From: Chlorokybus atmophyticus
Lineage: Eukaryota; Plantae; Mesostigma and Chlorokybus algae
DNA length: 64,000 nucleotides
Direction of reading: 5' to 3'
Assembly: GCA_009103225.1 (NCBI GenBank)
Contig: RHPI01002656.1
Span: forward strand, 248,001-312,000
Shown here: piece after piece, positions 7,416 to 36,879 of the stretch
How positions within the stretch are numbered: position 1 is the stretch's first letter
Layout: every line of letters starts with the position of its first letter
Program-made: the position numbers and the translations under genes
The notes under the pieces: generated by a model
Seen by the model: the letters and a program-made list of their open reading frames with translations, nothing else
The model's database searches: none
What the model was told of the DNA's origin: nothing

Positions 7416-10400
7416 ATGGCTGCTGCGGTTGCTGCCAGCGCAGCCATGGCTGCGTCGTCGTCGTCGTCGTCGTTGTCCAGCTGGGAAGCGGGATTTATGA
7501 GCAGGAGGAGGCCGGCGACAACCAGCAGAACCACGAGGGCGACGGCGCCCACATCGTCAGCACGGCGCGTGGTGCTGACGCCCAGGTGCACGGCGACTGT
7601 GGGTGCTCCTCAGACTGCCTCAGACACCACCTCCACCTCCACTTCCACCTCCTCGTCGTTGTCCGTCGTCGCAGTAGCTCGCTCCCTGTCGCCGTCCCCT
7701 CCCCCGCTGCTCTCAACCGATGTCTTGGCCACGCCTGTCACCCTGCCAGAAGAGTTCTACTTGGAGCCGGGCGATGTCAGCGCCGTGCTGCCGCCTGATC
7801 CCGAGGACGGTGCTGATGCTGCTGTGGGCATTGATCCCACCCGCACCGCCATGGGTTACGTGCGTCGTGTGCTCACTTCCAAGGTGCACAACGTGTAATT
7901 TGCGCCTCTTTCTTGCATTGGCAGAAAGACACGTTGTAATTCTGTCGCAGTGTGTGTGCCAAAGCAGGTGGAATGCAGTGCACATGCTGCTTTCGGTGTA
8001 TTGATTTGCGCTACTGAGTAGCATCAACTGTGCATGCTTCACGTGTAAGTATGCTAGGCACCTGTTGCATCTGTTGCGCGTGCCTACAACTCTTATTATT
8101 CCTTGGTTACATGGTGCATATGATGTAGACCGCTGGTGATGTGCTGGCTGACGTTGCACCTTGATGCCAATGGCAGGTGTATGATGTGGCCATAGAGTCA
8201 CCCTTGGAGCACGCGCCGCGGATCAGCGATCGCAGCGGATGTCAAGTGTACCTCAAGCGCGAGGATTTGCAGTCGGTACGGTTTCCACCAAATTCTGTCA
8301 TGCGTTGCACGAGTTTTTGGGCCAACATGACTGCTATTGATATGCATGTGCGCTGGTTGCTATCTTAAGTTGTGAAGCTTTTTGTGCCAGGTTGACACAA
8401 ACGCAGCAAGCTTGCACTCGGAGTCTTGGCGAATTGCTGAGTAAAACTGGTCCATGTGTGCAGGTGTTCTCTTTCAAGTTGCGTGGTGCCTACAATAAGA
8501 TGGCCAACCTCACACCCGCACAGTTGGCCAGTGGTGTGATATGCTCGTCTGCCGGCAATCACGCTCAGGGTGTTGCGCTTGCAGCACGGGAGCTGGGCTG
8601 CAGTGCTGTCATTGCCATGCCTATAACGACACCCATGATCAAGGTAAGTTGCGAGCCTTCTGCCTTGCGTACCTGTCTGTGTGTGTATGAGGGTGCACAT
8701 GTTGAACACCGACCATGACAGGTGAAAGCTGTTGAGCGGTTGGGTGCAACCGTGGTGCTGGTTGGGGAAGCTTATGACGAGACGCAAGCATATGCGAAGG
8801 TGCGTGCAAGTTGTGTAAGGAACACATGTTCTTCTTGTCACACACCTCCCTATTGCATAGCTTTTGGCACAACTTACATATGCATTTGCACACAGGCGCG
8901 AGCACTAGAAGATGGGCGTGTGTTCATACCTCCCTTTGACGATCCAGATGTAATTGCCGGGCAAGGGACCGTTGGCATGGAGATCCTGCGGCAACATCCC
9001 GGGGACCTGCATGCCATCTTCGTGCCCGTTGGAGGCGGCGGGTTGATCGCGGGCATCGCGGCTTACGTGAAGGAGATCCGCCCTGAGATCAAGGTAATTG
9101 GCGTGGAGCCAGTCGAGGCCAACGCAATGGCGCAGTCGCTTGCGCTTGGCCATAGAATCCGTTTGGCGCGCGTGGGCGGCTTCGCTGATGGCGTGGCCGT
9201 GAAGATGGTTGGTGAGGAGACCTTCAGGATGTGCCGGAGTCTTGTCGATGGCGTCGTGCTGGTCGGCAATGACGCCATATGCGCGGCAATCAAAGACGTG
9301 TTTGAAGAGAAGCGCAGCATACTCGAGCCAGCTGGCGCGCTGGCCCTCGCGGGAGCCAAAGCTTACATCAAGAAGCACAACTTGTCCGGTGGCAACGTGG
9401 TGGCTGTGACGTCTGGGGCCAACATGAACTTTGATCGGTTGAGGCTTGTGTCGGAGCTTGCCGATGTTGGAGAGCGCAAGGAGGCGGTCCTCGCAACCAC
9501 AATTGCAGAAACACCCGGCGCATTTAAAGACTTTGTGGGGCTGCTTGGCAATGTCAGCATCACGGAGTTTAAGTACAGATACTCGCATGACAGCAAGGCT
9601 TTCATCATGTACAGGTAAGCATTGTCCTATGTATGGGGACTCACATGCGTCTCTCCCCCCTCAAATGTGCTTTGCATCCTTCTTGCCATTGCATCTGGGC
9701 AGGGGCCCGCTGCGTAGCGCTGTGCGTGCTCAGTTTGCTGGCTGGCCGTCATTTGGGTCCTGCCGCTCACCCGCTGTTGCCACCGCCTCCCTCCCGCCTC
9801 ATGCCACTGCGCTGATTGCTACCGCTGCCCCCTCCGTGGGTACGCGCTCTGATGTTTGCAGTGTTGGCGTGCCGAGTGAGGACGAGCTGGCAGCCTTGAA
9901 GCACCGCCTGGCTCAGGCCGGTCTTGAGACGCTGGACATGAGCGACAATGACCTGGCAAAGATCCACTTGAGACACTTGGTATGTTAATATTTCTGTGCA
10001 GGCTTGATGCATTGTTATCTGGTGTGGTCTAGAGCATCCATGCCTGGTCGCTTGTCGGCGGAGGTCAATGTGGTGTCCATCACCACACACGTGTGTTGAC
10101 AACTTTGTGGATGCTGCTTAGGTCGGGCGAAACTCTACAATGGCGAACGAGTCCTTGTGGCGGTTTGAGTTCCCCGAGCGCCCGGGTGCACTGCATCAAT
10201 TCCTTGAGGCGTTCAGCCCGCGCTGGAATATTTCCTTATTTCATTACAGGAATCAGGTACTCACCTTTGCAGATAATGCAATTTGCTCACAGGTTGAGGG
10301 GCTCTGGAAGTGCTTATGCGGTGTTTGCAACAGGGCGAGGGCACAGGCAATGTGTTGGTCGGTCTGCAAGTCCCTGTTGACGAGGAGGACGCATTCCATG

Positions 10401-11005: not shown

Positions 11006-14000
11006 TTATCCAGGGTTGTCAGTCATCCTTTTGCGCCGCTTACTTGACCTGCCTACTGGTGTCTCTTGCACTGCAGCAAGTGCGTCTGTGAGTGCAGGCG
11101 CCTTCAGCATCGCACTGCGGCGCCTTTTAGCTTGCTTCTTACTTTTCCGCTCCAAGCCTTCTTCGATGGGCTCTTCACCCTGTCCACCCCTGCCAGCAGC
11201 CGCAGCATTGTCTTCACCCCCCGCTTCATCAGCAGGCGCAACCTCCGACTCCACAGCATCAGTTGTCCTCTTTTTCTTTTTCCTTCTGCTTGTCTTGCCT
11301 TTTGCCTCGACTGTATCGGAATCATGAACACCGTCCGCAGTATCTGCTGCTGGCCTCTCTTCGGCCTCGACATGGCCGTTCGCGTCCGCTTTTTGTCTCT
11401 GATCTGCGGGGACTGCCTCCAGGACATCAGTCATGGTCAAGCGCCCCACACGATCTGCGCTAACTTGCTGTACATTGGATGCCTCTTCCACAGCATTCCC
11501 AGCAGGCAGCAAGACCGACATAGCCGCGAGCGTGTAGTCAAGGAGAAAAGTGCTTTGTACCTATACGGCTTGATGTCAGGGCAACGAGCCCCAAGGGCAG
11601 TGCAGTAAATGCTGCTCCTACAGCACGCGATGAGTCCTAGAAGCTTACCAGGCGCTGTATCCGAGCGTAGTGCCGTTGTGTGTATGGCAGCACACCTTCC
11701 AACAGCTCCTTGATGTTTGGCACCTGCAAAGGAGAACAGTCAGACGGAGCGGCACTAACAGTAATGTGCGCACAGATACAGCAAGACCTTGCGACCTTGA
11801 GACTGGCATGACACAAAGGCGGCCAACCTGCAGTAGGATCTCTGGACGGACAGCAGTCAGCATCACATGAAGGACATGCTGCGCAGTGTGACAGAACTTG
11901 GCATTTGTGTTCCACTCGCGCATGTACTGCAAGCAGGTTTGCAACCGTGACGCGTCGAACATTGCAATGATGTTCTCCAGCATCCTGTCACCCTCTGGAT
12001 CTTTAACAACATCACCGAGCACCTGCGCGTAGTACCGTCACAGCTTCAGCATGCCTAAACAAGATGGTGCAATGCAGCGAAAGCTCTGCCTTACCTTGAG
12101 CAAGCGGAACGGCTTCTGCAACTCAAACGCATATTTAACAGCTTTGGCATAGTCAGCTTGTGTAAGTGCATTGGCAAGGTCCTGCTCCATCAAGACTTGC
12201 TTCTCCTGCAGTGCATGCAGGGCGAGAAGTTAAACACCATGGCAGATAGATCATGAAGCTTTTGGTCAAGTGCAAAGAGTTCTTACATCAGACGCTCTAG
12301 CAGCCTCCTCTTCCTCTTGGGTTGTGTCCACCCACACATTGATGGTTGCATCGCCACCTCCAGATGCAATGTGTGCTTCATCCCTTCTTACAGCAAGGGC
12401 CCACACTTTGTCTTCATGGCCGTCCAATGTGGCCACACACTCGTTTGTGCGCAAAGTCCACAACTTAAGTAGGCCATCCGCACCAGCTGAGATGAGTTGG
12501 GTGCCGAGCGACATGAATGAAACCTTCAGAACGGAGGCTGTGTGCCCTTCCAATGTGCGAATACATGCGCCGTCACTGATTGACCATATCTTGATGGTCT
12601 GATCGCCAGAAGACGTGACAACAACCTTGTCCACTGGAGAGAACTCGCAGCACCATACTCCCCGCTTGTGGCCTCGCAGTGTCAGCTTCAACTGCAGTTC
12701 AGGCAGTTTCCAAAGCTTCACAGTCCGGTCCTGAATGATACACACAACATTGATGTTGAAAGCCTGAAGCAAAATGTTTCCCTCAAGGGTTAGTGTTGCA
12801 GTAGTAAATCTGATGGGCTGCAAGGCCATCTCACCTGAGAAGCACTGCACAACAGGCTGTCATTGGGCGCTATAGCAATGGAATTGATATCCTTCTCATG
12901 CGCTGAAGCAATGGCAAGTGGTTTCAACTTGAGGGGCTGACCTCCGGTGTACTTGTCCAAAGGTGACAGGTCCCATAGTTTGAGGGTCTTATCACTGCAG
13001 ATGGCATGTTAGTCACAACATCCCATTGGCGGGCGCGCTGTGCTAATAAACAAGCATACTACCTGCTGCCAGACGCTAAGTATGCTGCAGTCTTGCGCGA
13101 AAACGCGACGGCTCCAACCGCAGCAACATGCCCTGTCGCCAATGCGATGCACTTGTTGTCCTCAGCATTCCAGACACGCACCTGATGCCATGTACCAAGT
13201 GTTCAGGTTGCTCAATGGGTAAGAAGGCAAAGTGCAATATATGTTAGGTATCAGTGCTGCGTACCGTGTTGTCCTTGCTGCCTGTTGCCAGACGCAACCG
13301 TGAAGATATCGCTGGGCAAACATCCAGGCTCAACACTATGTCCGTGTGACCAGGCAATGACTTCATGCAAGCATGTGTCGTGGCATCGTACAGTCGCACC
13401 TGCAATTGATGCCATGCAGTCACGCTCATGTCATCACGACACCTCCTTTTCTTTGCAAGTCGTGACTGCGTTACCATGTGCATTGACAGTCAATGCTGAC
13501 CTGCTCGCTGTTTGTAGCCACTGCGAGATATTGGTCATCAGAGCCCGCAAATTTCATGTCAATAATGTCATCATTGTTGCCGATCAGCTGGCGTACTACT
13601 TGCAGTCGGCCCTCCCTAACTTGAAGAAAGACCAAGCGCTGGTCTGCTGTGACGCAGAGGACCTCGCGGCTTTTGCCAAATGCAAAAACCTGCAACAGGC
13701 CGCCAGCGCCTGCCAACGCAGCATCATCAAACTCGTACAAGCTCTCAGCAGTTTCGGTGCTGTAAAGCCGCACTTGGCCCTTCTCGCCAACAGCGAGGAA
13801 GTTGACTGCATTGGCCTTGCCATGAGCCGCCTTGGACTTGACAGACAAGTCAAGTAGCAACTCAGGCGCTTCTGCAATGCCCTCTAGCGCTTCAAACACC
13901 GGCACAGTGGACTTGAGAGTATTCTTGCGTAAGTCCCATGCATTCACAACCTGTGCCACCACGTTAGCACACCATGTGCGCCATCAGCATGCTTTGCGCC

Positions 14001-15419: not shown

Positions 15420-16014
15420 GCCCCGCCACCCCACCGCCGCCGCCACCGCCGCCGCCGCCTGACCCAAACACTCGCCCGCAATGTGCTAACCCTAATTCGA
15501 CCCCGTCCGAACCCTGTTTCACTCGACCCGGCTCAGAGTTGTAACGGTCGATCCGGATCCAGACCGTGCCACCATGCATGTACCAAAAAGGGCGAACCAG
15601 TGCAGCAGAGAGTGGCTCCAACCACCCCCGCGGAACAAAGCATAACGTTATGCTCAACAGTTTTTACGTAAGGTTGCGCAGCATTGCAGACTGGTAGTTG
15701 AGGACACAACGTGATGCGTAGGTTATGCTAACGTGCGACGTGACCTGGGCGTCACGTGAACGACAAACTACATCTGTTGGCAGCACTGAGCGTCGCTGCC
15801 ATTTTCGCACACATACACACACGCACGCATACTCTCTCTGTACAGGTGAGGCCAACTCGTCCCTGGCATGGCCGGGCGGCGGTGGCGGGGTTGTTAGCGT
15901 GGCCTGGGTGGTCAGGGTGACGACGTTACTAAGGAGGGAGAGAGAGCATTTGTCTCAAAGCTGGTGCAGTGTGCTTCTTTTTGACAGGAGGTTGTGTATC
16001 ACCTCCTTTGCGCC

Positions 16015-19000
16015 ATGGCGGCGACGTGTGCGCCGGCCTCCGGCACATGGGCGGCCTTGTGCTTGGCGTTGTCGGTGCTGTTGCTGGGGACGTGGACGCC
16101 GTCTGTCTCAGCAGCGACGTGCAACAGGCCGGAGGGCTGCACCTTTGAGGACATGGCGGACAAGCTCGTGCTAGGAGCGACCGTGCTGCAGATTGCCAAC
16201 CACAACATCACTGTCAATGGCACGCTGTACCCTCGCCAGATGCTTGACGTAAGCGAGCTCCTCCTTGTCGTCATTGTGCTTGTTGGGTTAAGATGACGCC
16301 CTGGACCTTCCCCTAACTGTCACGACGCACACACTGCAGATAAGCGGCCCGTACAAGCGCATAGTGAGCGGCAAGGAGGCTGTGTGGATCCCCCGCACAG
16401 GTATCATCTCACATCCATCAAGTGACTCCAACAAGTGCATGCTTGTGACTGTTGGTTGATGGTTGTTGACAATTGTTGTTGTGGCTGTGCAGAGAACACG
16501 TTCCGCATCCTTTACCGCAACACGCTGGGCTCCCCGTCGCTGCTGCACGCGCACGGCCTCACCCCCGTGCACAACCTCGACGGCGTGTCGTACCTCAGCG
16601 CCCTGCCCATCAGCAACAACCGCGAAGCCATGTGCGCCTCTTGACTGTATACAGCATGCAGTGTATGATAGTGGTTGCATCGTTGCTGATGAGTGATTGT
16701 GCTTGCAGGTATGTGTACGAGTTGCATCCACAGAATGCTGGCTCGTACCTCATCCACTCCCACTACGGGTGGGGCCACGACAAAGGCATGGCCGTGCCAC
16801 TCATAGTGGGTGAGTACGAGCTCCAAACATACACATACACGCGCACGCGCACACACACTTCCACACGCACAAGCACACGCCAGTGTGCACACGTGTACAC
16901 AGCCCTGCATATGCATACTCAAGCTCTTAATCCTTACCAATCTGTTGTACCTTGTCTAGATCGAGCGCCGCCGGTGGACTATCCGCTCCTCGCTCAGGTT
17001 GAGGAGGCGACAGAGTCCCTCCTGTGGCTTGAAGAGCTTTGCCCCATCTCACGCTTTGGCCCCATCGATTGCAACCCCGAGCTCGTCCTCCAAGCCGCAA
17101 CCGTAAGCATGTTGAACAGCAACAACAACAGCAACAGCAACAACAATTCCAACGTCTCTGTGCTGTGCAGCCTTTCTTGGGGCCGAACATCGATGTTGGC
17201 TTCGGCGGTTTCAAGTATCACCTGGCGAACGACCACCTGCTGAGCGACCCGCACGTGGACTACGTGATGCCCGGGGAGTTTGTGCGTCTCCGCATCATCA
17301 ACGCCGCCGCCGTTACCCGCTACGAGTGCGACTTCGGCAACCTCGCCCCCGTCACCGTCATCGCCACTGACGGCCAATGGACCATCCCATACACTGTAAG
17401 TCCATCAACATCATCACGATGGTCAATCACACCCACACACACAACCCACGCACTACAACAGTGACAGCAACAACAGCAACAACGGAAACAACAACAACAG
17501 CAACAACAACTTGTTGATCATCGTGCAGGTGACTGGGAAGCTGCTGGTTGGTACGGCTCAGCGTTTTGACTTGCTAATCACAATGCCGAGCACGAACGGT
17601 TCGTATGCGGTTCAGTGCCACGAGTGGTCGTTGCCGTGGGCGCGCACCCGTCTGATTGCGGGCATGGTGTACGCCGTGGGCGGGTCCAAGTTCGCCCCCG
17701 TGGCGGGACAGTTCAGTGACGGGTCCCCCACAGACGGCTGCGGCCTGCCCGACAACCCTGACACCAACCCCGACCCCAACTGCTCGCAATACGAAGAGCC
17801 CAAGCAAGACATTGAGATGGCACTGAGGTGAACACCATGGACACGCACGCACACACACACGCACACACTTACACACGCGTGCGCACATACACTCACATCG
17901 CATTGCATCAATGTTCCCATAGCCATACATGAATGTCACAACGCGTGTTGTTGCCGTATAGCCGAACCCCTTGTCTCATCTCTCAGGGCATACTACCCGT
18001 TGGAAGAGAGGCCGGCAGACCGCGAGTTGACATTGTTTGCAACAACCGACATCCTGTGCAATCCCACCAACCTCTCGTCCTGCACGCCCGATACACCCCT
18101 CTTCGACTTCAGCTTCGGCAACAAGCGCATGTTCATGGCGCCCATTGGCAATGACTCCCCCTTCAGGTGTGTGTGCGCGAGTGCGCGAGAGAAGGCATGT
18201 GAGCAAATCTCACAACTACACGGTTGGCTGATGTTGTTGGTACATGTATGCACAGGCCCAACTCTGCCCCAGTGGAGGTCCAGCTTGGCGAGCGCGTGTG
18301 CATCAACATCGTTAACCGCGCCACAGGGGACCACTACATCCATCTGCATGGACATCACTTCCAGGTGGGTTTGACATCACCACGCAGTTGTCATTGTGTT
18401 GTAACAGCAGCCTATGCATGTGACTCATACCTCCTTCTCTGCTGCTTAGATTGCGGAGATCAATGGTGTGCCGATCAAGGGCGGTGCAAGCCGCGACACG
18501 TTCTTGCTGTCGGACTCCGAGCTCGGCAATTATGTTAATACTTGGGGTCCAACTTTCCAGACGCGGGTTGCCGCGCTCAACACGTCCGCGCTGCCCAACG
18601 TCAAGGTCTGCTTTAACGCCGACAACCCCGGCGTGTGGGCCGTGCACTGCCACTACACGTACCACTTCATCATGGGCATGATGACCACCATCGAGTACGT
18701 TGCCAGCGACATCAAAGCAAGAGTAAGTGCTGCGTGTACTTTTTGGTAGCATGCATTGAAACACACGAAGGATGCTACGCATTGATTGTGTGTGGCCACG
18801 CATGTGTGCGTGCGTGCTGGTGTGCACATGAGTACATTTGCTCCGGGTATAAATGGATTGAATGATGAAAACTGTACCATCTGCAGCCCCGTACCGGTTG
18901 CACGGACACCAATGCGGAGAACTACGAGCCCGAGAGCACCGTTGATGACGGCAGCTGCAAGTACTATGCTTGCAGCGGGGACCCCAACAAGGGCCAGCCA

Positions 19001-22000
19001 CTGCTCGGTGCAACCAGGTGGGTATCAGTGCCTGATTGCAATGGATGTCAACGGTGATTGGTCTGATACACCAACCACTTTCTCGTCCCCTCTTAGGTGG
19101 CCATTCCTCGCCCCCGACCCGCCGTTCAACACATCCCTTAAGAACTTTGCCGATGAACTGATTGCGGGTGCAACCATCCTCACTCTGACACCAACCACAA
19201 TTCGGTCGCCAAGTCCCGCCGAGCCCGACACAACATATGACCGCGAGCTCCTCATCGTGCGTGTCCCTCACAAGCAAACACATCAACACGTGTCCACAGG
19301 TGGCGTCAGTCGCTGACTTGTGCATTTCTGTTTGCCAGGGACAAGGACCCAACTGGAGAGTGGTTGACGGAGTTGGCGGCGTGTGGTTGAATGAAACCGA
19401 CACGCACTTCCGCATCCTTTACCGCAACAAGGTACGGCAACATACCAACATACACACAGTATGTGCATATACCTCATGTTTGCAGCAACAAACCAACAAC
19501 CAATGCTTGTGCAGTTGTCTGAGGAGAGCATTCTGCACGCTCACGGTCTGACCCCAACGACCAACATGGACGGCGTGTCGTACCTCTCTGCGCTGCCAAT
19601 ATACCCAGACCGCGAGACGCTCTACGTGTACGAGATCCACCCTCAGAACGCCGGCACATACCTCATCCACGCACACTATGGCTTCGGCCACGACCGCGGC
19701 CTCGCCATCCCCCTCGTCATCCGTAAGTACAGCATCAGAACTGCGTGTTAGTGATGAGAGTTTGTGTTTGACACTGTGTATGTGTGTCATAAACAGAGCG
19801 TCCCGCGCCTTTGAGCTACCCGCTCAGGTCCCAGCTGGCGGACTATGAAGACGCGCTGATGTTCTTTGAGGAGCTTTGCCCCTACTCCAGCAACACGCAG
19901 TACCAGCAGGAGGCCGAGTGCCAGGTCGACAAGGTCTTTGACTACGGCAGCCTCTTCTTCGGTGAGACTGAGAAATAAACAATCACAGCTACCTACACTT
20001 GGCTGTGTGTCTAGCTGTGTATGCACTCCATGTGCTGTAGCATATGACGCGCTAATGTACACATACACACTCACAAACACGCACATATGCTCACGCATTC
20101 TCATGTGCACACATGCTGAAATGGCTTGTGTGCCATCAGGTCCATACAACGACCTGGCCTTCGCGGGTTTTCGGCACTACACCGTGAACGGGAAGACGCT
20201 GGACGACCCGTATGTTCACTACACGACACCCGGTCGGCGTGTGCGCTTGCGTCTGATCAACGCCTCGACGCACACCAACTACAACTGCAGCCTGGGCGGC
20301 CTCGGCAAGGGCACCATCATCGGCATCGATGGCCAGTGGGTCTACCCGTACAACGTCACCTCCTTCTGGATCACCGTCGCCACACGCATGGACATCCTCC
20401 TAACAATGCCCAAGGTGCGTGTGTTGTGCATCCTTGGTCGGTTGCACATACACGACGCAGGAATAAACACTCAACAATGTGTTTGCTCAATGCAGGGCGC
20501 TGGAGCCTTCCCCATCATCTGTGCCGAAACCAACCTGCCATTCGTCACAAACAGGATGAAGAGCGGGTAAGTGTGACAACAACATACACAACACCCACAC
20601 AACAGAATACAGGTTGCTGACATTGTTGTAACAAATGTTGCAGATACATCTTTGTGGTGTCGGACCCCGGGCAGGGTTACCTGCTGGCGCCACCACCGTT
20701 CACATACAACATTGGCAACCCGAATGTTGGTTGCACCCGGCTTCCGCCTACTGGCCTTCTCGCTGGCTGCGACCCCTTTTTCCAGCCCACTCAGGCAAGG
20801 CTTGGGGGCAAAAAGCACACTCTCATGCGTGTAACATTGAGTCAGGGTGATGACGTGTATGCGTGTGTGTATGCAGGACTTGGAGAAGCAGCTGCGAGCA
20901 TGGTACCCCCTGGAAACGAGAGCCGCGGATCGCAATGTGACGGTGGACCTAACGGCTGACTTGCTGTGCGACCCAACCAACCAGACCACGTGCACGCGGG
21001 AGACACCCTTCCTCGTCTTCTCGTTCGATCGCAACACGTTGCACCTTCCACCCGACGGCAACGGAGCTGAGGACTACAATTTCCAGGTGAGTGTTGTGTC
21101 ATCAACTTTACGACAAGGCAGGCTTGATGCGTGTTTGACCATCTGGTTGGTTGGACACAGGCTCCGTTCAGTCCGAACCCGGACCCGATTCGCGTGCAAT
21201 TGAACGAGCGCGTGTGCATAGAGTTCCTGAACCGTGCTCCCGGCGACCACGTCCTGCACATGCACGGGCATCACTTCCAGGTCATGGAGATCAACCACGT
21301 GCCTATTACAGGCGGCGGTGCCATGCACGACACCATCTACATCATGGACTCGAACCTCGACGAGTTCTTCCCTAAGGTGGAGTCATGAACAACAACACAC
21401 AGTGAAAGCATCAAGTGGATGTACAAAGAGCACAGACTGACTTGTACATCTACATTCGTATAGGGCCCAGGGTTTGGAGATTACGTGGCCACGCTTCCAG
21501 ATGAAGAGCTTGGACAACTGAAGATTTGCTTTGATGCGGTAAGTTGACACAGGATGAGTGACTTGTACCCGCAAAGCCGTATCTTCCTAGGCACATGTTT
21601 CCTTATACTAACATGTTTGTCTCGCAGGACAATCCGGGCATATGGGCTCTGCATTGCCACTACAACCTGCACTACACGGCGGGCATGTTGACGACGGTGG
21701 AGTACGCTGCCAGCGATGTTCAGCCATCGCAACGTACGGGTTGCCAGGACCCCAACGCCGGCAACTTTGTCCCTGGTGCCACTGCCCCTGGCCGCCTCCC
21801 CTGCTTCTACTTTTGGTGCCCTGGTAAGGCGAACAACAAACAGACCAAAGCCACTTTCTCACATGTCATTGCTTGTGCGTATGTGTTTGCTTACACAATG
21901 TGGTCACTTGCAGCCCCTGTCACGACTGGTGCGGCGGTGGCAATGTTCAACCTGCAGATTGTTGGCGTCACACTGAAGCAGTATGCATCATTGGGGGGGC

Positions 22001-22933
22001 CCTCAGTGGTTGCAAGGTGAGTGGTTTAATTCACGCAGTCTGGCCACCTGTGCCCAACATCTGGAATATGACAGCATGGCTGACAAACCCTGTGCTCCAC
22101 AGCTTTATTCAAACGGACTTGTCGGCTTACTATGCGGGCCTCTTCCCTGCCAACGGCGTTGATCTGGGCTCAATTGACATACGCAACATTAGCGATAGCA
22201 CAACTAGTGCTGCAGTGAACCTTGTGGTAAGACTTGGTACACACGCACTCTCGTCTCGCTCGCCCAGTCTGCAGCAGTGTCCTCACAAAGTTTCACCCTC
22301 TTGTGCAGGTATTTGTCCGCGTGGTCCCTGTGCTTCCAGCCACTGCCTCGACACGTGAGATTCGGGATGCTGTAAGTGGGCTCATCCCCGCCGTGCTCAA
22401 CGCCACGCAGATCCTTCTCGCAAACCCCTCGCAGTACATGAACGAGACCGTGTACCGCACCGCCAGCACGGTTGTCGCTACCTCTGCTGCAACAGTCACC
22501 TGTGAGTCCACACACCTCTGTCATGCTGGCACATATCAAGGTTGAAGGTTACTGAAGGTGACTGATGTATGCTCATTTGTGTTACAGCGGAGATTTACAC
22601 ACCGCCAGTGAACCAACCACCCAAAGGCTACAAGAACCACTTGCCATTGGGATTCTTTGTTGGATTCCTTGGAGGTTTGGGACTTCTCGTCCTCGCTCTC
22701 ATGGGTAAGAACAGCATTGCTTGGTACTTATGAAGTGGCAAGGCTTGACATCAGCATGTGTGCTTACCTTGTTCACCGCTGCCCTGGCAGTTTGGGGCAT
22801 CGTGCGATATGCCAAGCGCGGCACGCGGACGCACGTGTCCAACAAGTCCAAGCCATATAGCACCGAGTCGCCGGCAGGAACGTCCGCGTCACCATCGTCA
22901 TCGGCTGCCGCAGAGAAGAAGGAGACTGTGTGA
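16015..22933 (+). CDS. Type-I membrane multicopper oxidase with two tandem complete three-domain (laccase-type) units; many short exons
   Basis: Signal peptide (WAALCLALSVLLLG...SVSA). Unit 1 motifs: LHAHG (~16546), IHSHYG (~16755), HYIHLHGHHF (~18332), HCHYTYHFIMGM (~18645). Unit 2 motifs: LHAHG (~19536), IHAHYG (~19668), HVLHMHGHHF (~21248), HCHYNLHYTAGM (~21652). C-terminal TM (LPLGFFVGFLGGLGLLVLALM/VWGIV) and a short cytosolic tail ending EKKETV*. Confidence 0.92.
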
Positions 22934-23078
22934 ACTGTAATAAAACAATAGTCACAAGGGCCTCTGCTGGCTTTGTGCAGTGAAGCTGCAGTGTACAGCG
23001 AGCTCAGCTGCGGGCCAACGACGGGAAGCCTTTACAACCACTTCAGCCACCTTTGGCTTGAGGCGTTGCACAAAGATT

Positions 23079-23209: not shown

Positions 23210-26200
23210 CTATGTCGCCTCCGTGTCTATATGAGGCATGGTGTTACTTTGTTGAACTTGTAATCCATGCGCCTTCTGTCCTTCTTGAATAGCTTCCCTG
23301 CAGATGATTGACAACATTAAAGGTCTTAAGCAATACAACACTACAGCATCAGCAAGCAATGCCATGACCGCGTGCATGACTGCTGAGCCTCAATGCATAA
23401 GTGAACATGCCTGAAAGCGTTGACCAGCTCCATGTTTTCTGGGTCCAGCTGGCAACCTTCAAAGAATGCCGTTGCTGCGTCTTCATAACGCTTCATTGCT
23501 CTGTATGCTGCTCCTTCTCGGAAGCATGCCTGTTGACATTGACAACCAGCCAGGTTGTCATCAACAAGAGAAGAGGACTATTAGCGTATTATACGTGCAT
23601 GTTGAAGCAACTTTCCCAGCTGACCCACACAGGGGTACCACCAACACTTGCCTTAGCCCAGTCCGGACGCAGTACCCGTGCATGCTGACCATCTTGCAAA
23701 GCTCCTTCAAGATCGCCAGCATGAAGCCGTGCAATGCTACGATTGGAATGCAGAACACCGCTCCCACGATCGAACTGCAGCGCCTGCCAAGCAAGGTCCC
23801 TCTCACTACCTCGAGCGTAGCTTTGAAGGGCAGCATGCACCACACCAAAAGATGAGTTGTCGTACCTGAGAGTATAAAGCAATCGCTTGGTCAAACTGCT
23901 TTTGCCTGTATGCCTCATCTCCCGCTTGCTTGAGCTTTAGAGATTGGGCTGCCGCCTCCGGGGAGACAGGTTCTATAGTCCATGCTGTTGGTGTGGCAGC
24001 ATGGCTCGTGGGTTTACTAGAAGCACTCTGTGCTGCGATGCTGGGCGCATAAGCTCGCATCACAGACTGCACATCCCACGACGGCACATTCGGGTCGGGT
24101 GTTGTGCGCGGCAAGAGTAACTCTATCACATTGCGCTGGCCCGCAAGAGCCGCGGCACTGATAGGTGTGTCTCCCTCCTATACGACATGGAATTGACCTA
24201 AGGAACTTTTTAAACCACACATTAAGACAAGGCCCCGATGACTTACCTGATCCCTGAGGTTTGCATCTGCGCCTGCTTTGAGAAGCTCCGCCACCACCTC
24301 AGCAAAGCCACTATCAGCTGCCACGAACAAGGGAGTGACTCCTCCAGTTGCGCGCAAATTGGTGTCTGCCTTGGCCTGCAGGTATGCAATGGAGATGAGA
24401 GCCACATGTTGCGCTGTTTGCTGTCATTACATGCGTCTTGAGCTCCTTTACTCACATCAAGAAGAACCTTCACTGTGTCCAAGTCTCCTGCAGCGGTGGC
24501 CATCATCAGCGCTGTGACACCATCCTCCCTCGCAGCACTTGGCTGGATGCCCAACCATGACGATACCAACAAAGTCAGCTGCTTGTTCACGCAACAGCCT
24601 AATCCAGAGCAATAACTGGCGTACTGACTAGCATGCCATGTTAGCATGGAGAAGGGATGCAGGGTATGAAACCACCTTCGTAAGCTGTAGTTCACAAGCC
24701 GGAATCCAGCACAAGAACGTAGGCATGCTACACTAGTACCTCTGCTGCATGCTCAAGAAGCAGTTGGACGGTTTCGCAATGACCGTGGCCAGCAGCCCAC
24801 AGCAGGGGTGGGCCGTTATTGCTTGGAGCGTTGACATCGACTCCTCGCGCCAGTAGTGCCTCGGCCAAACCGTTGGCTCCTGTTTATGAACGGATGCTTA
24901 GTAAAGGCCAACGTTTTCCCTGTACTCACTGACTGGCTGCTGATAGCCCGTCAGTTCAGTGTTAGAAAAGAGAAACCAATGCAAACGGGTAAGAGTGACA
25001 ATGATAATGGCACGACTTGAAAAAGAGCGCGTGCGTATACTTCAACATCAACCAGAATGATGACAGACAAACACAAGTTGACACGCCCGCCCACCCGCCC
25101 ACCCACCATACACACACCTTCAGCAGCAGCGTGGTGAAGTGCCTGCGCGCGTGTGCTCATCTCCTTTGCTGCTGGATCCGCACCCTTGCTCAGCAGATAC
25201 ACAGCTGCATCCTCATGACCTCCTCGCGCAGCAAGCAGCAACGGCGTCTCTCCTGACATTCACCCAACATTGGCATCATGCTGTTGGTCTTGACACAGCA
25301 CTGAATATGCCTTAACACAACTGACTAGTCGGTAAGGCGCTGCAGGGTAAACATTGACAGTATCCAACCCTTGCAAGCAACCATGTTCCACATTACACAC
25401 CATGGTCATCAGCAAGGTCAACAGCAACACCGAGCTCTTCAACCAGGTAGGCGCATGCGCCCGTATGGCCGTTCAGTGCAGCAAAGTGCAGCGGGCTTCG
25501 GCCGTTGCCATCCCGCACAGACTGCACCACAGCGGCCACGCCTGCCCCTTCATCACATGCCTTTGCAGACAGCCTGCATGACGCAGCAAACAAGCTCACT
25601 TATGTCTACTTGTGCACAATGTACTATGCACAAAGTGCAGCCTTCAGCGCGGCGTACCGCAGCAGCTCGACGTTGCCCTCCTGTGCTGCCCTAAGCAAGC
25701 TGTTCACGCGCGCGCGTGCGGCCAAAGCCTCGCCCGCTCCAGTGTCTTCGCCGCGTTGGTTGCTAGCTGGCGCTGCTGCCGCTTGCTGGATTGTTGCACT
25801 GCCCGTAAGCTGCGGCCACACCTGCGCTTTCCCACACAACAACAGTCACACCTTGTGTGCATGACACTGACTGTGCGCACTGACCTAGCCTAAGTCTGAG
25901 GTGAAAGCTGCTATCTGTCAACTGCTACCACTGCCATGCCTGTAAAGGGTTCTGCTTGGCCAAGGAGACAACAACTGCAGGAGGGCGAGCTTCGACTCGC
26001 CAGTTGGACTTGTTTTTGTCAACTAGCGCAAACAGAGGGTTGGCGTCCACGAACAGGTGCTTGTCATCACGCACAGTCACTTCCACCCTCAGAGACTGCG
26101 GCTCTATCTGCAAGACGTGCAGCAAACCAGCACAGACAATCAGCCTTCAGCTTGATTGTCGCCTCAAGATTACAGAGCAGCAAGCGCATCCATCTCGCTG

Positions 26201-26920: not shown

Positions 26921-28093
26921 ATGAGCTTGTTCCGGCGGCGGCGCGAGCTGGAGGAGCCTCCTGTTGTCGAGGCGCCGGTGACGTCCGCTTCTGCTGCACG
27001 TACCACTGAGCTGCTGCCATCAGCAGAGGCCCACACGGACGACTTGTCGAGGCCGGCAGCTGGCCGGCTCTACAATCCGTACGCAGAGCTTCCAGCGCCG
27101 TTTGATATCAACCAGCTACCGGTAATGCTCAGTTCACAATCGGTGGTCGTTTGATGCGCCTATACCAGTATTCTCGCTGACTGCTGAACGAGCAGGACCA
27201 GAGCGTTGAGCTCAAGTTTGTTTGAATGCTTGCATGCATGTGTGCGCTGCGTTGCTTTGCTATGATTGCAGTTAACTGTAACCCGTTTGTAACACTCAAG
27301 CTCTTGTTTCCTGTCAGTGTTGAAGAGGAGTATCTGTGTACACACTACTCACGCACATGAGTCTGTTGCAGCTGTTGAGAGAACTTATTGAGTTGTCAAG
27401 TCTTGTACAGTGATAACAAGAGGAGTTTGCCGTATCAAGAATACCATGCATGCATGCTTGCAACGTTGCGCACTTTCCATTCAACAAAGCGCTGCTTAAT
27501 GTGAATGTTCAATGCAGGGGTTATATCAATTGCCGGATGCGCCTGAGCACTTATTCGGTGAAGAAGCGCTCAATAAGCGAAGATCATGGAGCGAAAATTT
27601 GACGTATTACACTGGCAGTGGTTATCTAACAGGTGCCATTGCTGGCGGCGGGTATGGCATTGTGGAGGGGTGGAGAGCTAAACCAGAATCAGGTCAGCAG
27701 CTGATTTCCCTAAACAAATTTGTGTGTCAAGGCTGCAGTTGTGGGAATAGTGAATTGAACAGTGTGCCTGTTATGTATGTTACAGGCGTTGATACAACAA
27801 AGTTGAGGATAAACAGGCTACTAAACAGCGCCGGACAGCGTGGGCGGACAGCAGGGAACGCTTTGGGTACTCTGGGTCTGTTCTATTCCAGTTCTGAGAG
27901 CTTCATCAGCTACTTGCGTGGCACGGACGACTGGCTGAACTCGCTGGGGGCTGGCCTGGCTTCAGGTGCAGTGTACAAAGCATCTGCGGGGCCGAGGACC
28001 GCGGCAGTGGCAGCTGCTGCTGGGGGCTTGGCGAGCGCTGCGCTGCTAGCTGGCAAGCAAGTGACCAAGCGTTATGCTCATCAATTTATGTAG
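26921..28093 (+). CDS. TIM23: Mitochondrial inner membrane translocase subunit Tim23
   Basis: YNPYAEL, LYQLPDAPEHLFGEE, RRSWSENLTYYTGSGYLTG, KLRINRLLNSAGQRGRTAGNALGTLGLFYS, DDWLNSLGAGLASGAVYK; three exons. Confidence 0.9.
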
Positions 28094-30945: not shown

Positions 30946-31741
30946 TTACATCCATCGCCGGACCTTTTTCGTGTATTGGACATACCGCATGCCGAACTTG
31001 GACCGCATGTAGTCCTCCTCAGCAGGAATAACAATGTACACGATGTACAGAACGAAGGGGATGGCGGTGAGTACCAGCCAGTATGTGTTCATGGCGGCTG
31101 CCAGACCAGCTTGAAGGAAGAAAAAGGACATGTAGATAGGATTGCGGCTTTGTCCAAAAGGCCCGGTCGTCACGATCGCCGACACCTTCTGGTGATGCTT
31201 AACGCTGGTCTTGTTCTTTGCAAGCTCCGCCAGACTCATGTAGAAGATGAATACAGCTGCACATGCACGTATGGATGCAGCTAAGGAAAAGAGCCAGCGA
31301 ATGTGTGCATATTCAGCAGCAAGTGTTAGCATGCCCATGTGCGCACTCCTGGACATGATCACACGTATGCACACGGACACCCAAGGGCATGCCAGTGAAA
31401 ATACTGTGGGGTTCGCACTCGCGAACATGCACACACGCAACATGGGGTTGCCACTTGTGGTGAGTTGAAGCCTCCAAGTCACAACATGGATGTGTACTGC
31501 ATGTATGATCGGCACTGCTGCCTGGGGTACCTGTGGAAAGCGCGAACGCGGCCGCCAACAGCTTTACAAAGTAGTGTTCCTCAGTGAACATGATAAATGG
31601 CTTGTAGAAGAACTTGAGCATCACCCCGAGGACAATGCATGCGAGCTGAAACACGGGCGGCGGGACCTTCACTTCAGGAGAGTTGCCGGGGTCGGCCGCA
31701 TGCCCTTTGAATGGCGACAGCACGCTCTCTACCCCGCTCAT
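30946..31741 (-). CDS. Isoprenylcysteine carboxyl methyltransferase / PEMT (Ste14) family membrane methyltransferase
   Basis: N-terminal VPPPVF, IVTTGPFGQSRNPIYM, VIPAEEDYMRSKFG, YVQYTKKVRRWM*; one intron. Confidence 0.85.
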
Positions 31742-33182: not shown

Positions 33183-36100
33183 ATGGACAAGCTGTTTACA
33201 AAAGCGCTCGGCGCAATAGAGGACACCATCAACGAGTATCCAGTCAATGCGGTCCCGGCTGCACTTCCGCATTCCGCTCCGACGGACGAAACGGCAAGGC
33301 GGGCTCTTGCGTTCTGGAGAGACGTGGCATTGCAAGCCCGCAAGGCAACTTGGGACGAACAGGCAACGCAGGTATGTCGTGTGCAGTAGTATGGTACGCA
33401 TGCATGATGTGCTTGCGAACAACCACATTTGACAGTGTGTGGTGGTGTGTAGGTTGCAGACCTGCAGGAAGGCAGCTTGAAGAGCCGCAAGCGCCTGGCT
33501 GAGCTTACCAAAGAGTTCAGGTCTGGCAACTCAACCGAAGCGGACATCAAGAAGCTCATACCTTCTTATCAGTCAGAGGTAATTTATGCAAGCAAGTTCT
33601 CACACACCCGAAGAACTAGTACCAATGTGCATTGCTGCAGGTTGACAGCCTCACGAAACGTGCCAAGTTTGCGGAGGGCGCCTTTCTGGGCCTTTACAGG
33701 CTGTTTTACGATGCTGAAGACCCAACGCCAGCACTCTCCACACTCGTTGAGCTGCAGCCGCGCCTGCACATGGCTCTGAGCGACAGTCAGCGGCTACGCC
33801 AGGAGCTCGAGGTGTGTGTATGCGAATGTGGAGGCATATGAGTCCGCGTATGTGCGTGTATATGTAGGTGCGTGTGTGCGTATGAAGGTGTGCATGTGTG
33901 TGCATGCACGCAGGATGCTTGCTTACGTTAAAGGCAGCACATGACCAGCGCAGTATCCTGGGCCCAGTGTTTGTACAACTGATGGTGTTTGGGTAGGAGC
34001 TGAGAGCCAGCATGGGCGACAAGGAGGTGCTGATTGCAAGGGTTCAGCGGTTGGAGCAGCAGGCAGCAGTGTCGGTATGACTGTCGCCTGTACTGGAACC
34101 AAAGTGCTGTGATGAGAAGACTGAGACGTAATGGTGTGAGTGCAGGATGAAGCTGCTGAAGCCCGCATTCGTGAGGCGGCCAAGGAGGCGGAGGCTGCAT
34201 ATGAACGGGAACGACAGGCCGCTGACCGCGAACGGCTCGTTCAACGACAGCTGGCAGACTGCCAGAGAGAGCTGCAGCAACTGCAGCAAAGCCACGAGTC
34301 GGTGCAAAGCATGCTGTTCTCGTTACAGGTAAGCTGTTAGAGCTCTCCTCTCTTAACTCTGCAGCTGGAACGTACCCTGGGCACATGCTGATGGGATGGC
34401 AGTGCAGGCGCGAGCAGACGAAGACCAGGCGGTCAAACAAGCTGACTCTGAGACACTGTTGGAGGAGAACGAGCTTTTGCGTCAACAGGTGCGGCTGTGA
34501 CAGTTTGTCCAGACGCTACTGCATTATGCGCTTTGTATGCATGCTTAGCAACTGTGTACAGCTCAGCAAGTTGCTGAGTTGCAAAAAGTTGCTAAGCACC
34601 AGTTGCTTTGCAGGTGTTGGCGCTTGAAAAGAGTCGTGATGAACTCAGTTCTGAGTTCACCCGTCTTCGTGAAAGCGCTGTACATCCGGCCAGCGCAAGC
34701 GCAAGCGGTGACAGCATGGAATCATACCGGGATACGGAATTGAAGGCGTTGCGTGATGAGGTCACAGACGTGCGCATGCAGCTTGAGGTTGGTGGATGTG
34801 CACACATGCATGCGCACAAGTGATTGTGTTTGGAGTCCCACATGTGTGTTGTGTGCAGCTTGAGAGAAGTCGCACAGCTCAAATGTCGTTGGAGATGCAA
34901 GACACCTCCAATGGTGAAGCAGACCGCATTCGGGAGTTGGAACGCCAGCTAGACGAGCGGCCAACTGTTGCGCAGATGGAGTCCTTGCGCAAGCAGGTAT
35001 TGGTTGTTTGTTGCCACTGGCAAGTTGCTTGTCGTCTGCTGATTGCGCTTGTGCATCAAAGTGGTGGTGGATCTGTGCACCTCAACACCACAGCTGTGTA
35101 CAATCAGCATTCATGGACAGTAGTCAATGCACAAGTATGCATCGACTTCCACAATGATAATGTTCTAAGTCGCGATGTGTTCTTCTCTGCAGGTGCGAAT
35201 GCTGCAAGCGTTGGTTGATACCGAAGTCGAGGATGCGTGGGGGGCGGACGAGCAGACTGCAGCAAATACCGGTCAGCAGAATGTGACACAAGCGCTTCAG
35301 AAGAAGAACCGTCAGCTCACTGCTGAGCTGACCACCACAAAGGTGACAGCTGTTGCAATGGCGCCTACTTAAAGCAATGTGTGCAACATTTCTGATGCCT
35401 GCGTCCTGGCTTTCTGCAGGTGGCGCTTGACCAGCAGCAGTTGGAGAACCAATCGCTACAATCTCAGCTGGCTGAATCGCTGTCTGTCTGCGTAAATCAG
35501 CGCCAGCTGTTGACCAAGCTTGAAGAAGACCTTCTGCACAGCACTGCGCCATCTACCTCCTTAGAAGATGCAACCATGCGATCAGGTGAGACAATAGGTG
35601 ATACTTACCGGTTATCTGTGAGGAAAAGAGGGCGAGCGTGAGTACGCACAACTTGCCATGCGAGGATGTGGGCACATGGTGGATGTGTCACAATGCGCAA
35701 ACTATCACTTCATTTGCCGCAACTTCGATGCAGATGATGCGGAGGCCATCCGTGACAAGGCGAACACACCCTCGCCAGCAAGTACCACAGCCCCTGATGC
35801 CAACAGCATGTTAAGCATTGTCTGTGGACAACGTGACCGCTTCAGAGCGAGTGTGCTGGAGTTGCAGGCGGACAACAACCGGCTTGGCAGCCAACTCAGT
35901 ACGTGTACACACGTTCACCAGCAGGGTCCCTACAAGGCAATCTGGTATTTATCAGTTACTTGGTATCTAAAGCATAATTGCGTCATTCTTGCAGGTAACC
36001 AGCAGCTGGATTTGCAGCGGTTGCGCACGGACAACGTGCAGCTGTATGAGAAAATACGCTTCCTGCAGCGTTACCAGGGACCCAGCACGAAGCCCTTCGG

Positions 36101-36879
36101 TGCAGGGCTTACCGACTTTGCTGGGGACTCCAAAAGCCAGCGCTATGCATGCTTTGGGGCAGAGGTAGGGACTAGAAACGCAATTGATTGTTAATGCATA
36201 TTGATAATCTGAGATGAAGTCTGCACTGTAGGTAATTACTACCGAGTCGCTCGGGCGACGCCAAAATCGATATGCGTGCTTTGGGGTTAGTCCGGGATTG
36301 GAAGTCACCGATTACGAGTCAGGGGCCGTCTCAGCAGCCAGTCCTGAGGTACTGATTTTGTTTGTGTGACTTCACAGTCTTGAGATTGATCGGCTGGCCG
36401 ATCATCAGGTGCGCTACAAGAAGATGTACGAGGAGCGCATCAATCCGTTTGCGGAGTTCAGCCGACGGGAACAAGAGCAGAGTTACAGTCGCTTGCGGCT
36501 TCACGACAAGGTTGGCGCCAGTGGTACAATCTGCAAGCTGCTGCTACTGCTGCGTGTGTGTGTGTGTAAGATTCTTCTTACACCTATTGTGCAGATCACA
36601 CTGCGCAGCAGCAGGTTCTTCCTCAGCAACCCATTTGCACGTCTGTTCCTCTTCTGCTACACGATCATCCTCCACCTGCTGGTTTTCGGAGTGCTGTACA
36701 GGTTGTCAACATGCGGGCGCAGTGTGTTGCTAAGCGCCGCACAGGTCGATGCTGTCTCCGTGCAGTCTCCCGCCACCTCAGCTGCCGGGACTCTCGCGGA
36801 CAGGCTCGCAGATGCCATGGGCACCATCCTGCAATCGACACGCACTCTGACCACTGCTTCCCAGAGCGGGCAGCATTGA
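33183..36879 (+). CDS. CASP: Golgi coiled-coil protein CASP (CUX1/CASP family)
   Basis: ALAFWRD, SLKSRKRLAELTKEFR, YQSEVDSLTKRAKFAEGAFLGLY, long coiled coil, SMLSIVCGQRDRFR, LRTDNVQLYEKIRFLQRY, YEERINPFAEFS, C-terminal TM (ARLFLFCYTIILHLLVF). Confidence 0.92.

Follow-up and report, generated by a model that had tools for sequence, protein, structure and literature searches.

A putative membrane-anchored protein with two complete three-domain multicopper oxidase units in the alga Chlorokybus atmophyticus

We analysed 64,000 nucleotides (nt) of Chlorokybus atmophyticus DNA (hereafter the window; contig RHPI01002656.1 of assembly GCA_009103225.1, positions 248,001 to 312,000 of the forward strand) and describe a gene at window positions 16015-22933 that probably encodes two multicopper oxidase (MCO) units within one membrane-anchored protein. 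Our confidence in a single fusion gene, as read from the sequence, is fairly high; one mRNA and one polypeptide would then span both units. The enzymology is conventional. The parts of the gene are as follows (a slash marks the splice point).

16015-22933, plus strand: complete coding region of 1,441 codons plus stop, in 27 exons with 26 introns between them; ATG at 16015, TGA at 22931-22933
16015-16113, plus strand: putative signal peptide, residues 1-33; hydrophobic core, SVSA ahead of the mature start; aligns with the leader of the Mesostigma viride protein P0003 (see below)
16114-18722, plus strand: MCO unit 1, residues 34-588, exons 1-10; placed by Pfam matches and ligand columns
18723-18886, plus strand: intron 10, the first junction intron; 164 nt, AGA/GTAAGT...TGCAG/C, phase 0
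18887-19017, plus strand: exon 11, a three-Cys linker of 44 residues (589-632, including the first base of exon 12)
19018-19096, plus strand: intron 11, the second junction intron; 79 nt, CAG/GTGGGT...CTTAG/G, phase 2
19098-21732, plus strand: MCO unit 2, residues 633-1185, exons 12-22; without a signal peptide of its own
21733-22640, plus strand: second three-Cys motif and stalk (~160 residues), residues 1186-1373; aligns with the region after unit B of the Mesostigma proteins
22641-22804, plus strand: single predicted transmembrane helix, residues 1374-1399, split by intron 26 (22705-22790)
22805-22933, plus strand: predicted short, basic, Ser-rich cytosolic tail and TGA, residues 1400-1441

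Exon ends were set by GT..AG boundaries, an open frame and a gap-free match either between the two units or to the Mesostigma homologue. The resulting spliced frame contains no internal stop, and all 26 introns (68-178 nt) are GT..AG. An earlier note on this DNA had read one spliced frame from signal peptide to tail, and the 1,441-residue model, with its 26 canonical introns, bears this out; the junction coordinates proved exact (donors after 18722 and 19017, acceptors before 18887 and 19097). Pfam annotation of the exon translations recovered Cu-oxidase_3, Cu-oxidase and Cu-oxidase_2 as an ordered set in 16426-18746 and the same set again in 19395-22017, both on the plus strand, as the earlier note had expected of a profile search; the linker exon 11 returned no match in the Pfam scan. 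The proposed anchor and short tail also stand: residues 1374-1399 are the only strongly hydrophobic internal segment (hydropathy maximum 2.39) and are followed by the basic stretch RYAKRGTR. Directly 3' of the stop codon lie TGTAA and AATAAA-like motifs.

The junction between the units is compact. The end of unit 1 and the start of unit 2 are 375 nt apart, of which 131 nt are exon 11. Splicing across 18722 to 18887 has just one in-frame single-intron solution and splicing across 19017 to 19097 a strong one, the unit 2 frame being reachable from the linker only through the 79-nt intron with the best splice sites. Retention of intron 10 would lead to a stop after 10 codons. Unit 1 lacks a separate anchor, and a stop is reached there only when a junction intron is retained. 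Further downstream, a homopolymer frameshift at 21993-21999 was considered for the change of frame in the stalk and rejected, as an intron at 22017-22102 gives a gap-free match to Mesostigma. A SEA domain in the stalk, suggested by a weak Atlas lead (0.68), was not adopted; the AlphaFold model of the stalk was unusable (pLDDT 33).

Both units keep all 12 of 12 copper ligand positions:

Unit 1 ligands: H117, H119, H161, H163, H487, H490, H492, H563, C564, H565, H569, M574
Unit 2 ligands: H724, H726, H768, H770, H1083, H1086, H1088, H1159, C1160, H1161, H1165, M1170

The ligand columns (HxHG, HxH, HxxHxH and HCHxxxHxxxxM) are invariant in a 10-unit alignment of both Chlorokybus units, two Mesostigma units and six bacterial MCOs, in line with the claim of the earlier note that both units retain every copper motif. 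Each unit is thus predicted to have its own type-1 site with an axial Met and its own eight-His trinuclear cluster. All four algal units (Chlorokybus and Mesostigma) additionally carry an Asp immediately before the first type-1 His (GDH). The two units are 47% identical over their full length and have two introns in common, at the same alignment column and in the same phase (after RQMLD/RELLI, phase 0, and after PLIV/PLVI, phase 1); the remaining nine introns of each unit lie at differing positions. The few shared introns and the 47% identity suggest that the duplication is old and took place in a gene that already had introns, which agrees with the old internal duplication proposed in the earlier note.

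The same arrangement is found in Mesostigma viride. When the final unit 1 exon was used in an exhaustive profile search, only four strong matches came back, namely P0004 (a public Chlorokybus gene model, described below) and three Mesostigma models with 2, 6 and 10 matched stretches; an octopus hephaestin-like protein (P0068) matched the same query far more weakly (E 3.3e-06). The two-unit Mesostigma protein, P0003 (Mv00461, 1,756 amino acids (aa)), is colinear with the Chlorokybus model from the leader through both units and their linker to the stalk; the two agree at 631 of 1,406 aligned positions (45% identity). P0003 has two stretches for each of the three Pfam Cu-oxidase families. The order of parts is thus that of Chlorokybus: leader, unit A, three-Cys linker, unit B, three-Cys motif and stalk. 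The linker is kept (GCT.TN, TVDDGSC and the three Cys), as is the start of unit 2 (F-L-x-P-x-P followed by DEL..GA..LTLT), and the join from A through the linker to B has in-frame flanks in each of the 8 Mesostigma A-to-B junctions examined (8/8). The C-termini vary: P0003 ends in a Root_cap domain, unlike the transmembrane helix of the Chlorokybus protein, and a second Mesostigma protein, P0001, ends like Chlorokybus in a single transmembrane helix and a basic tail.

Unit 1 and Mesostigma A share an N-terminal EGC.FE...VLG.TVL...NITV motif and the linker type, and unit 2 and Mesostigma B share a C-terminus of the GC..P.A.NFVPGAT...C....C type. The four unit lineages (1, 2, A and B) are nearly equidistant (47-52% identity). 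In the approximately unbiased (AU) test on the unit tree, orthology of the units received 0.26 and independent duplication 0.058; rejection was confined to the crossed pairing, in which unit 1 goes with B and unit 2 with A (0.018). Because the unit tree does not resolve the pairing, we base the suggestion that the A-B order may be ancestral on the positional features and not on the tree.

The two larger Mesostigma models go further. P0002 (Mv21288, 5,038 aa) contains 6 HCH motifs and P0001 (Mv18537, 6,257 aa) contains 10. Unlike in Chlorokybus, the whole A-B-stalk module is repeated in Mesostigma up to five times, in near-identical copies. Most B-to-A joins consist of the same short peptide without a leader or anchor between modules, and the giant (A-B-stalk)n genes may therefore be real, some junctions apart: a few B-to-A joins carry an odd 25-residue insert that resembles a retained intron, and some joins look mis-spliced.

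P0004, the Chlorokybus match, is the JGI model Chrsp78S07737 (351 aa, window 20415-22017). Over its residues 4-286 it agrees fully with residues 933-1215 of our model (283 residues in the unit 2 region), which places the window in Chlorokybus, and introns 16-21, six in number and all in unit 2, are the same in both, which gives these introns independent support. The start of the JGI model is a Met inside the gene, and at its end the donor at 21824 is missed and intron sequence is translated. The rest of the 1,441-residue gene appears to be unannotated in the collections searched.

A measure of selection that is independent of any gene predictor comes from a related Chlorokybus contig (run X3, 95-99% alike), which differs from the window at 14 positions within 20129-20808. 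All five differences in the 359 nt of plus-strand exon covered are synonymous (5/5), and nine fall in 110 nt of plus-strand intron; the same contig has a 116-letter replacement inside intron 16. The pattern fits purifying selection on the coding frame of unit 2. Together with the colinear Mesostigma orthologue, the purely synonymous exon differences lead us to regard the locus as probably a real, selected fusion gene.

RNA data were contigs from three small, putative RNA runs that covered the locus, one of them from the sister species. Repeats at 17111-17154, 17456-17522 and 17835-17876 were left out of read placement; CA/CACG-type microsatellites and CAA/CAG runs occur in the unit 1 introns (16810-16959, 17103-17170, 17396-17528 and 17828-17986). 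Two sense introns were confirmed as plus-strand RNA joints, exact to the model: 19962-20139 and 22705-22790, the latter uniting both halves of the membrane helix. Both confirmed joints lie in or after unit 2, and the abundant contigs leave most sense introns unspliced. The locus also gives rise to a spliced RNA from the opposite strand:

17976-22990, minus strand: antisense RNA, spliced, with at least 8 introns, GT..AG on the minus strand except one GC-AG
18344-18430, 18653-18894, 20535-20680, 21254-21666, minus strand: antisense introns
21821-21951 (alternative 21952-22047), 22147-22220, 22500-22644 (GC-AG), 22698-22767, minus strand: antisense introns

Antisense intron 20535-20680 is present in all three runs (3/3), the sister species included. 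After splicing, the antisense RNA has no open reading frame (ORF) longer than 146 aa, and a hidden gene made of antisense ORFs was considered and set aside, the long minus-strand ORFs that were scanned having no significant Pfam match (best E 0.067). Several antisense splice sites are built from codons of the copper motifs (the Leu-His of HxH, and HCH). One RNA record of run X1 extends past an end of the examined stretch. Should the antisense RNA extend rightward past 22990, it may, as a guess, stem from read-through of the ankyrin gene that lies convergent near 24.2 kb.

A number of observations weigh against the reading as one double-unit gene. The junction introns 18723-18886 and 19018-19096 are never seen spliced in the RNA contigs, so that the single mRNA across 18722-19097 proposed in the earlier note did not appear in these data; one contig (19009-19247) is unspliced across intron 11 and another ends at 19018. 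A search for RNA runs over 16015-17830 listed none, RNA depth is zero over 17000-17800 and 19400-19800, and most RNA joints are CT..AC on the plus strand, i.e., they come from antisense RNA. At the protein level, a search with the Mesostigma junction (P0003:520-720) returned no junction-spanning fragment. Public annotation offers a fragment only, the comparison with Mesostigma draws on predicted, unpublished automatic gene models, and the unit tree does not settle whether units 1 and 2 pair with A and B, respectively. As to function, no iron-permease-like ORF was seen among the large ORFs of window 1-38 kb, and no curated family cut-off was reached (see below).

The junction findings bear most directly on the reading that the locus yields two products, either or both of a secreted unit 1 that terminates within a retained junction intron and a transcript with an internal start that runs from unit 2 to the membrane helix, the fusion frame being used rarely or never. 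This would account for the contigs that stay unspliced in intron 11 or stop at 19018, for both confirmed sense joints lying in or after unit 2, and for the lack of any listed run over the 5' half of unit 1; an early stop would follow if intron 10 or 11 were retained, and Met codons are available in the frame that is open from 18786 into exon 12. The unspliced contigs, however, are equally consistent with antisense RNA, and a free-standing unit 2 would lack the signal peptide expected to be necessary for a copper oxidase of the secretory pathway. The inter-unit space is short, and the linker with both flanks stays in frame throughout the Mesostigma A-to-B junctions. We therefore consider two products improbable. 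One fusion gene is favoured because the linker, read in the frame of unit 1, gives a peptide that Mesostigma has kept, and because unit 2 has no leader and unit 1 no anchor.

The prevalence of antisense joints raises the question of whether the locus really serves to make the spliced non-coding antisense RNA, with a sense gene that is silent or in decay. At least eight minus-strand introns, one of them seen in three runs, stand against two sense introns, and the unspliced state of the abundant contigs would fit. We regard this as very unlikely: a 4.3-kb frame is intact over 26 introns with every copper ligand kept, sense splicing does occur at two introns, the exonic differences from the sister species are synonymous in five of five cases, with sense introns diverging ~6 times faster, and the antisense RNA offers neither a long ORF nor a significant Pfam match. 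An artefact of the gene model, in which the true exons would leave one unit incomplete or break the frame, has to be weighed as well, given that 24 of the 26 introns are without RNA support and that for the donor of intron 25 (22502 or 22541), as for a few acceptors, the choice was a matter of judgement. Against it, all introns are canonical with unremarkable lengths, exon ends follow gap-free matches between the units or to Mesostigma, and six introns recur exactly in the JGI model; we give it hardly any credence.

Under the fusion-gene reading, one nuclear gene would encode a type I membrane protein of ~155 kDa, the topology being that expected from the signal peptide and helix. Its extracellular part would comprise two independently liganded three-domain MCO units, A then B, joined by the three-Cys linker and followed by the second three-Cys motif, the stalk, one membrane helix and the short cytosolic tail. 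Electrons from the substrate would enter each unit singly, at the type-1 copper of that unit (His, Cys, His and the axial Met), and the unit's own trinuclear cluster would reduce O2 to water. If fully loaded, the chain is predicted to hold 8 Cu.

In a trial two-unit alignment, all 70 bacterial homologues fell on unit A, leaving unit B without depth. In the AlphaFold2 model, Mesostigma unit A folds as a typical three-cupredoxin MCO (pTM 0.82, with the linker at low confidence), and the model matches 1aoz, 1zpu, 6klg and 2xu9 with E ~1e-29 to 1e-31 and TM 0.66-0.77 depending on the target, i.e., ascorbate oxidase, Fet3p and laccases about equally well. By sequence, the best matches among solved structures are a Pseudomonas MCO (6vow) and Fet3p (E ~1e-15); by fold, too, Fet3p is one of the top two. 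The Mesostigma units fell short of each NCBIfam cut-off tested: plant laccase TIGR03389 (54.8-68.8 vs 558.9), ascorbate oxidase TIGR03388 (50-51.9 vs 614.8) and CopA TIGR01480 (73.5-90.3 vs 478.95). The names laccase and ferroxidase used in the earlier note are accordingly guesses. Our own leading guess, by analogy with Fet3p and hephaestin, is a cell-surface metal oxidase (ferroxidase), a tentative assignment that we rate somewhat below even; a wall or scale phenol oxidase comes second and is less likely still. Mesostigmatophyceae and Chlorokybophyceae are reported to have no LPR1-like gene (Naumann et al. 2022, PMC9168544).

The gene lies among ordinary nuclear neighbours of the housekeeping type, which argues that the oxidase is not on a contaminant contig:

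8722-9618, plus strand: threonine dehydratase (PALP) ORF piece, Pfam match
12266-13962, minus strand: WD40 ORF piece
24243-24695, minus strand: ankyrin-repeat ORF, convergent with the oxidase gene
27512-28093, plus strand: Tim17 ORF piece
30946-31515, minus strand: phospholipid methyltransferase (PEMT) ORF piece
35658-36194, plus strand: CASP ORF piece

Just 5' of the start codon there is a possible intron of the 5' untranslated region (15843-15984, CAG/GTGAGG ... TTTTTGACAG/G), and ACGTG and CACGTG motifs occur near 15730-15760. The copper-response motif GTAC is not enriched upstream of the oxidase gene.

A tandem two-unit MCO was not found described in a full-text literature search or in the Chlorokybus/Mesostigma genome paper. 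Two complete three-domain enzymes per chain, and in Mesostigma perhaps ten, would be a different way to build large copper oxidases, and would provide a natural test case for whether tandem catalytic heads are independent, cooperate or divide substrates. These are the earliest-diverging streptophyte algae, in which redox chemistry at the cell surface (iron uptake, cross-linking of wall or scales) is relevant to how land was colonised; most of this 1,441-residue gene is missed by the public genome annotation. More speculatively, A and B may be a fixed, functionally specialised pair whose order has been kept since before the split of Chlorokybus and Mesostigma and whose modules were amplified in Mesostigma. 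We consider this possible but doubtful. If true, these proteins would form a new class, modular copper oxidases of the cell surface with several catalytic heads and 8 to ~40 Cu per chain, possibly restrained by a spliced antisense RNA.

Among single-unit proteins, the closest relatives found are 'FtsP/CotA-like' MCOs of Alphaproteobacteria (Azospirillum, Rhodospirillaceae and others), at ~27-40% identity to P0004 over 33-72% of its length. Like the Chlorokybus units, they contain the same three Pfam domains and all ligands; they differ in being single units of ~480-520 aa without tandem, Cys linker, stalk or transmembrane tail, and a long branch separates them from the algal units in the tree. 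The tandem layout of three plus three domains, for which the earlier note suggested an architecture search, is not unique: it occurs in Mesostigma with 2, 6 and 10 units and, in a multiplied form, in an environmental ORF that is only distantly related. The latter (P0146; JGI sample 3300017228, L001:1656-7871) is uninterrupted over 2,071 aa and holds at least four three-domain MCO units. It differs from the Chlorokybus protein in its units of ~515 aa, in its weak profile scores and 38% identity over the matched C-terminal stretches, and in a tail that is rich in Arg, Asp and Ser and is not a transmembrane helix. A second, 576-aa frame on contig L001 is open at its 5' end.

Membrane-anchored MCOs of eukaryotes include Fet3p and hephaestin, and FOX1 is usually counted with them. 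The yeast ferroxidase Fet3p (1zpu) resembles the Chlorokybus protein as a three-domain MCO with a type I anchor and a short cytosolic tail, and a C-terminal anchor of the Fet3p type, a hydrophobic helix followed by basic residues, is what residues 1374-1399 and their flank present; Fet3p differs in having one unit and only ~19% identity. MCOs are usually described as two-, three- or six-domain proteins, the six-domain type having a single oxygen-reducing cluster. In ceruloplasmin, hephaestin and FOX1, three two-domain repeats form one trinuclear cluster between the first and last domains. The Chlorokybus protein likewise has six cupredoxin domains per chain and, like hephaestin, a C-terminal transmembrane anchor. 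In contrast to the ceruloplasmin type, each of its halves matches a three-domain MCO over the full length and has the complete set of eight cluster His, which supports the proposal of the earlier note that this six-domain oxidase would have arisen by a route distinct from that of ceruloplasmin, hephaestin and FOX1.

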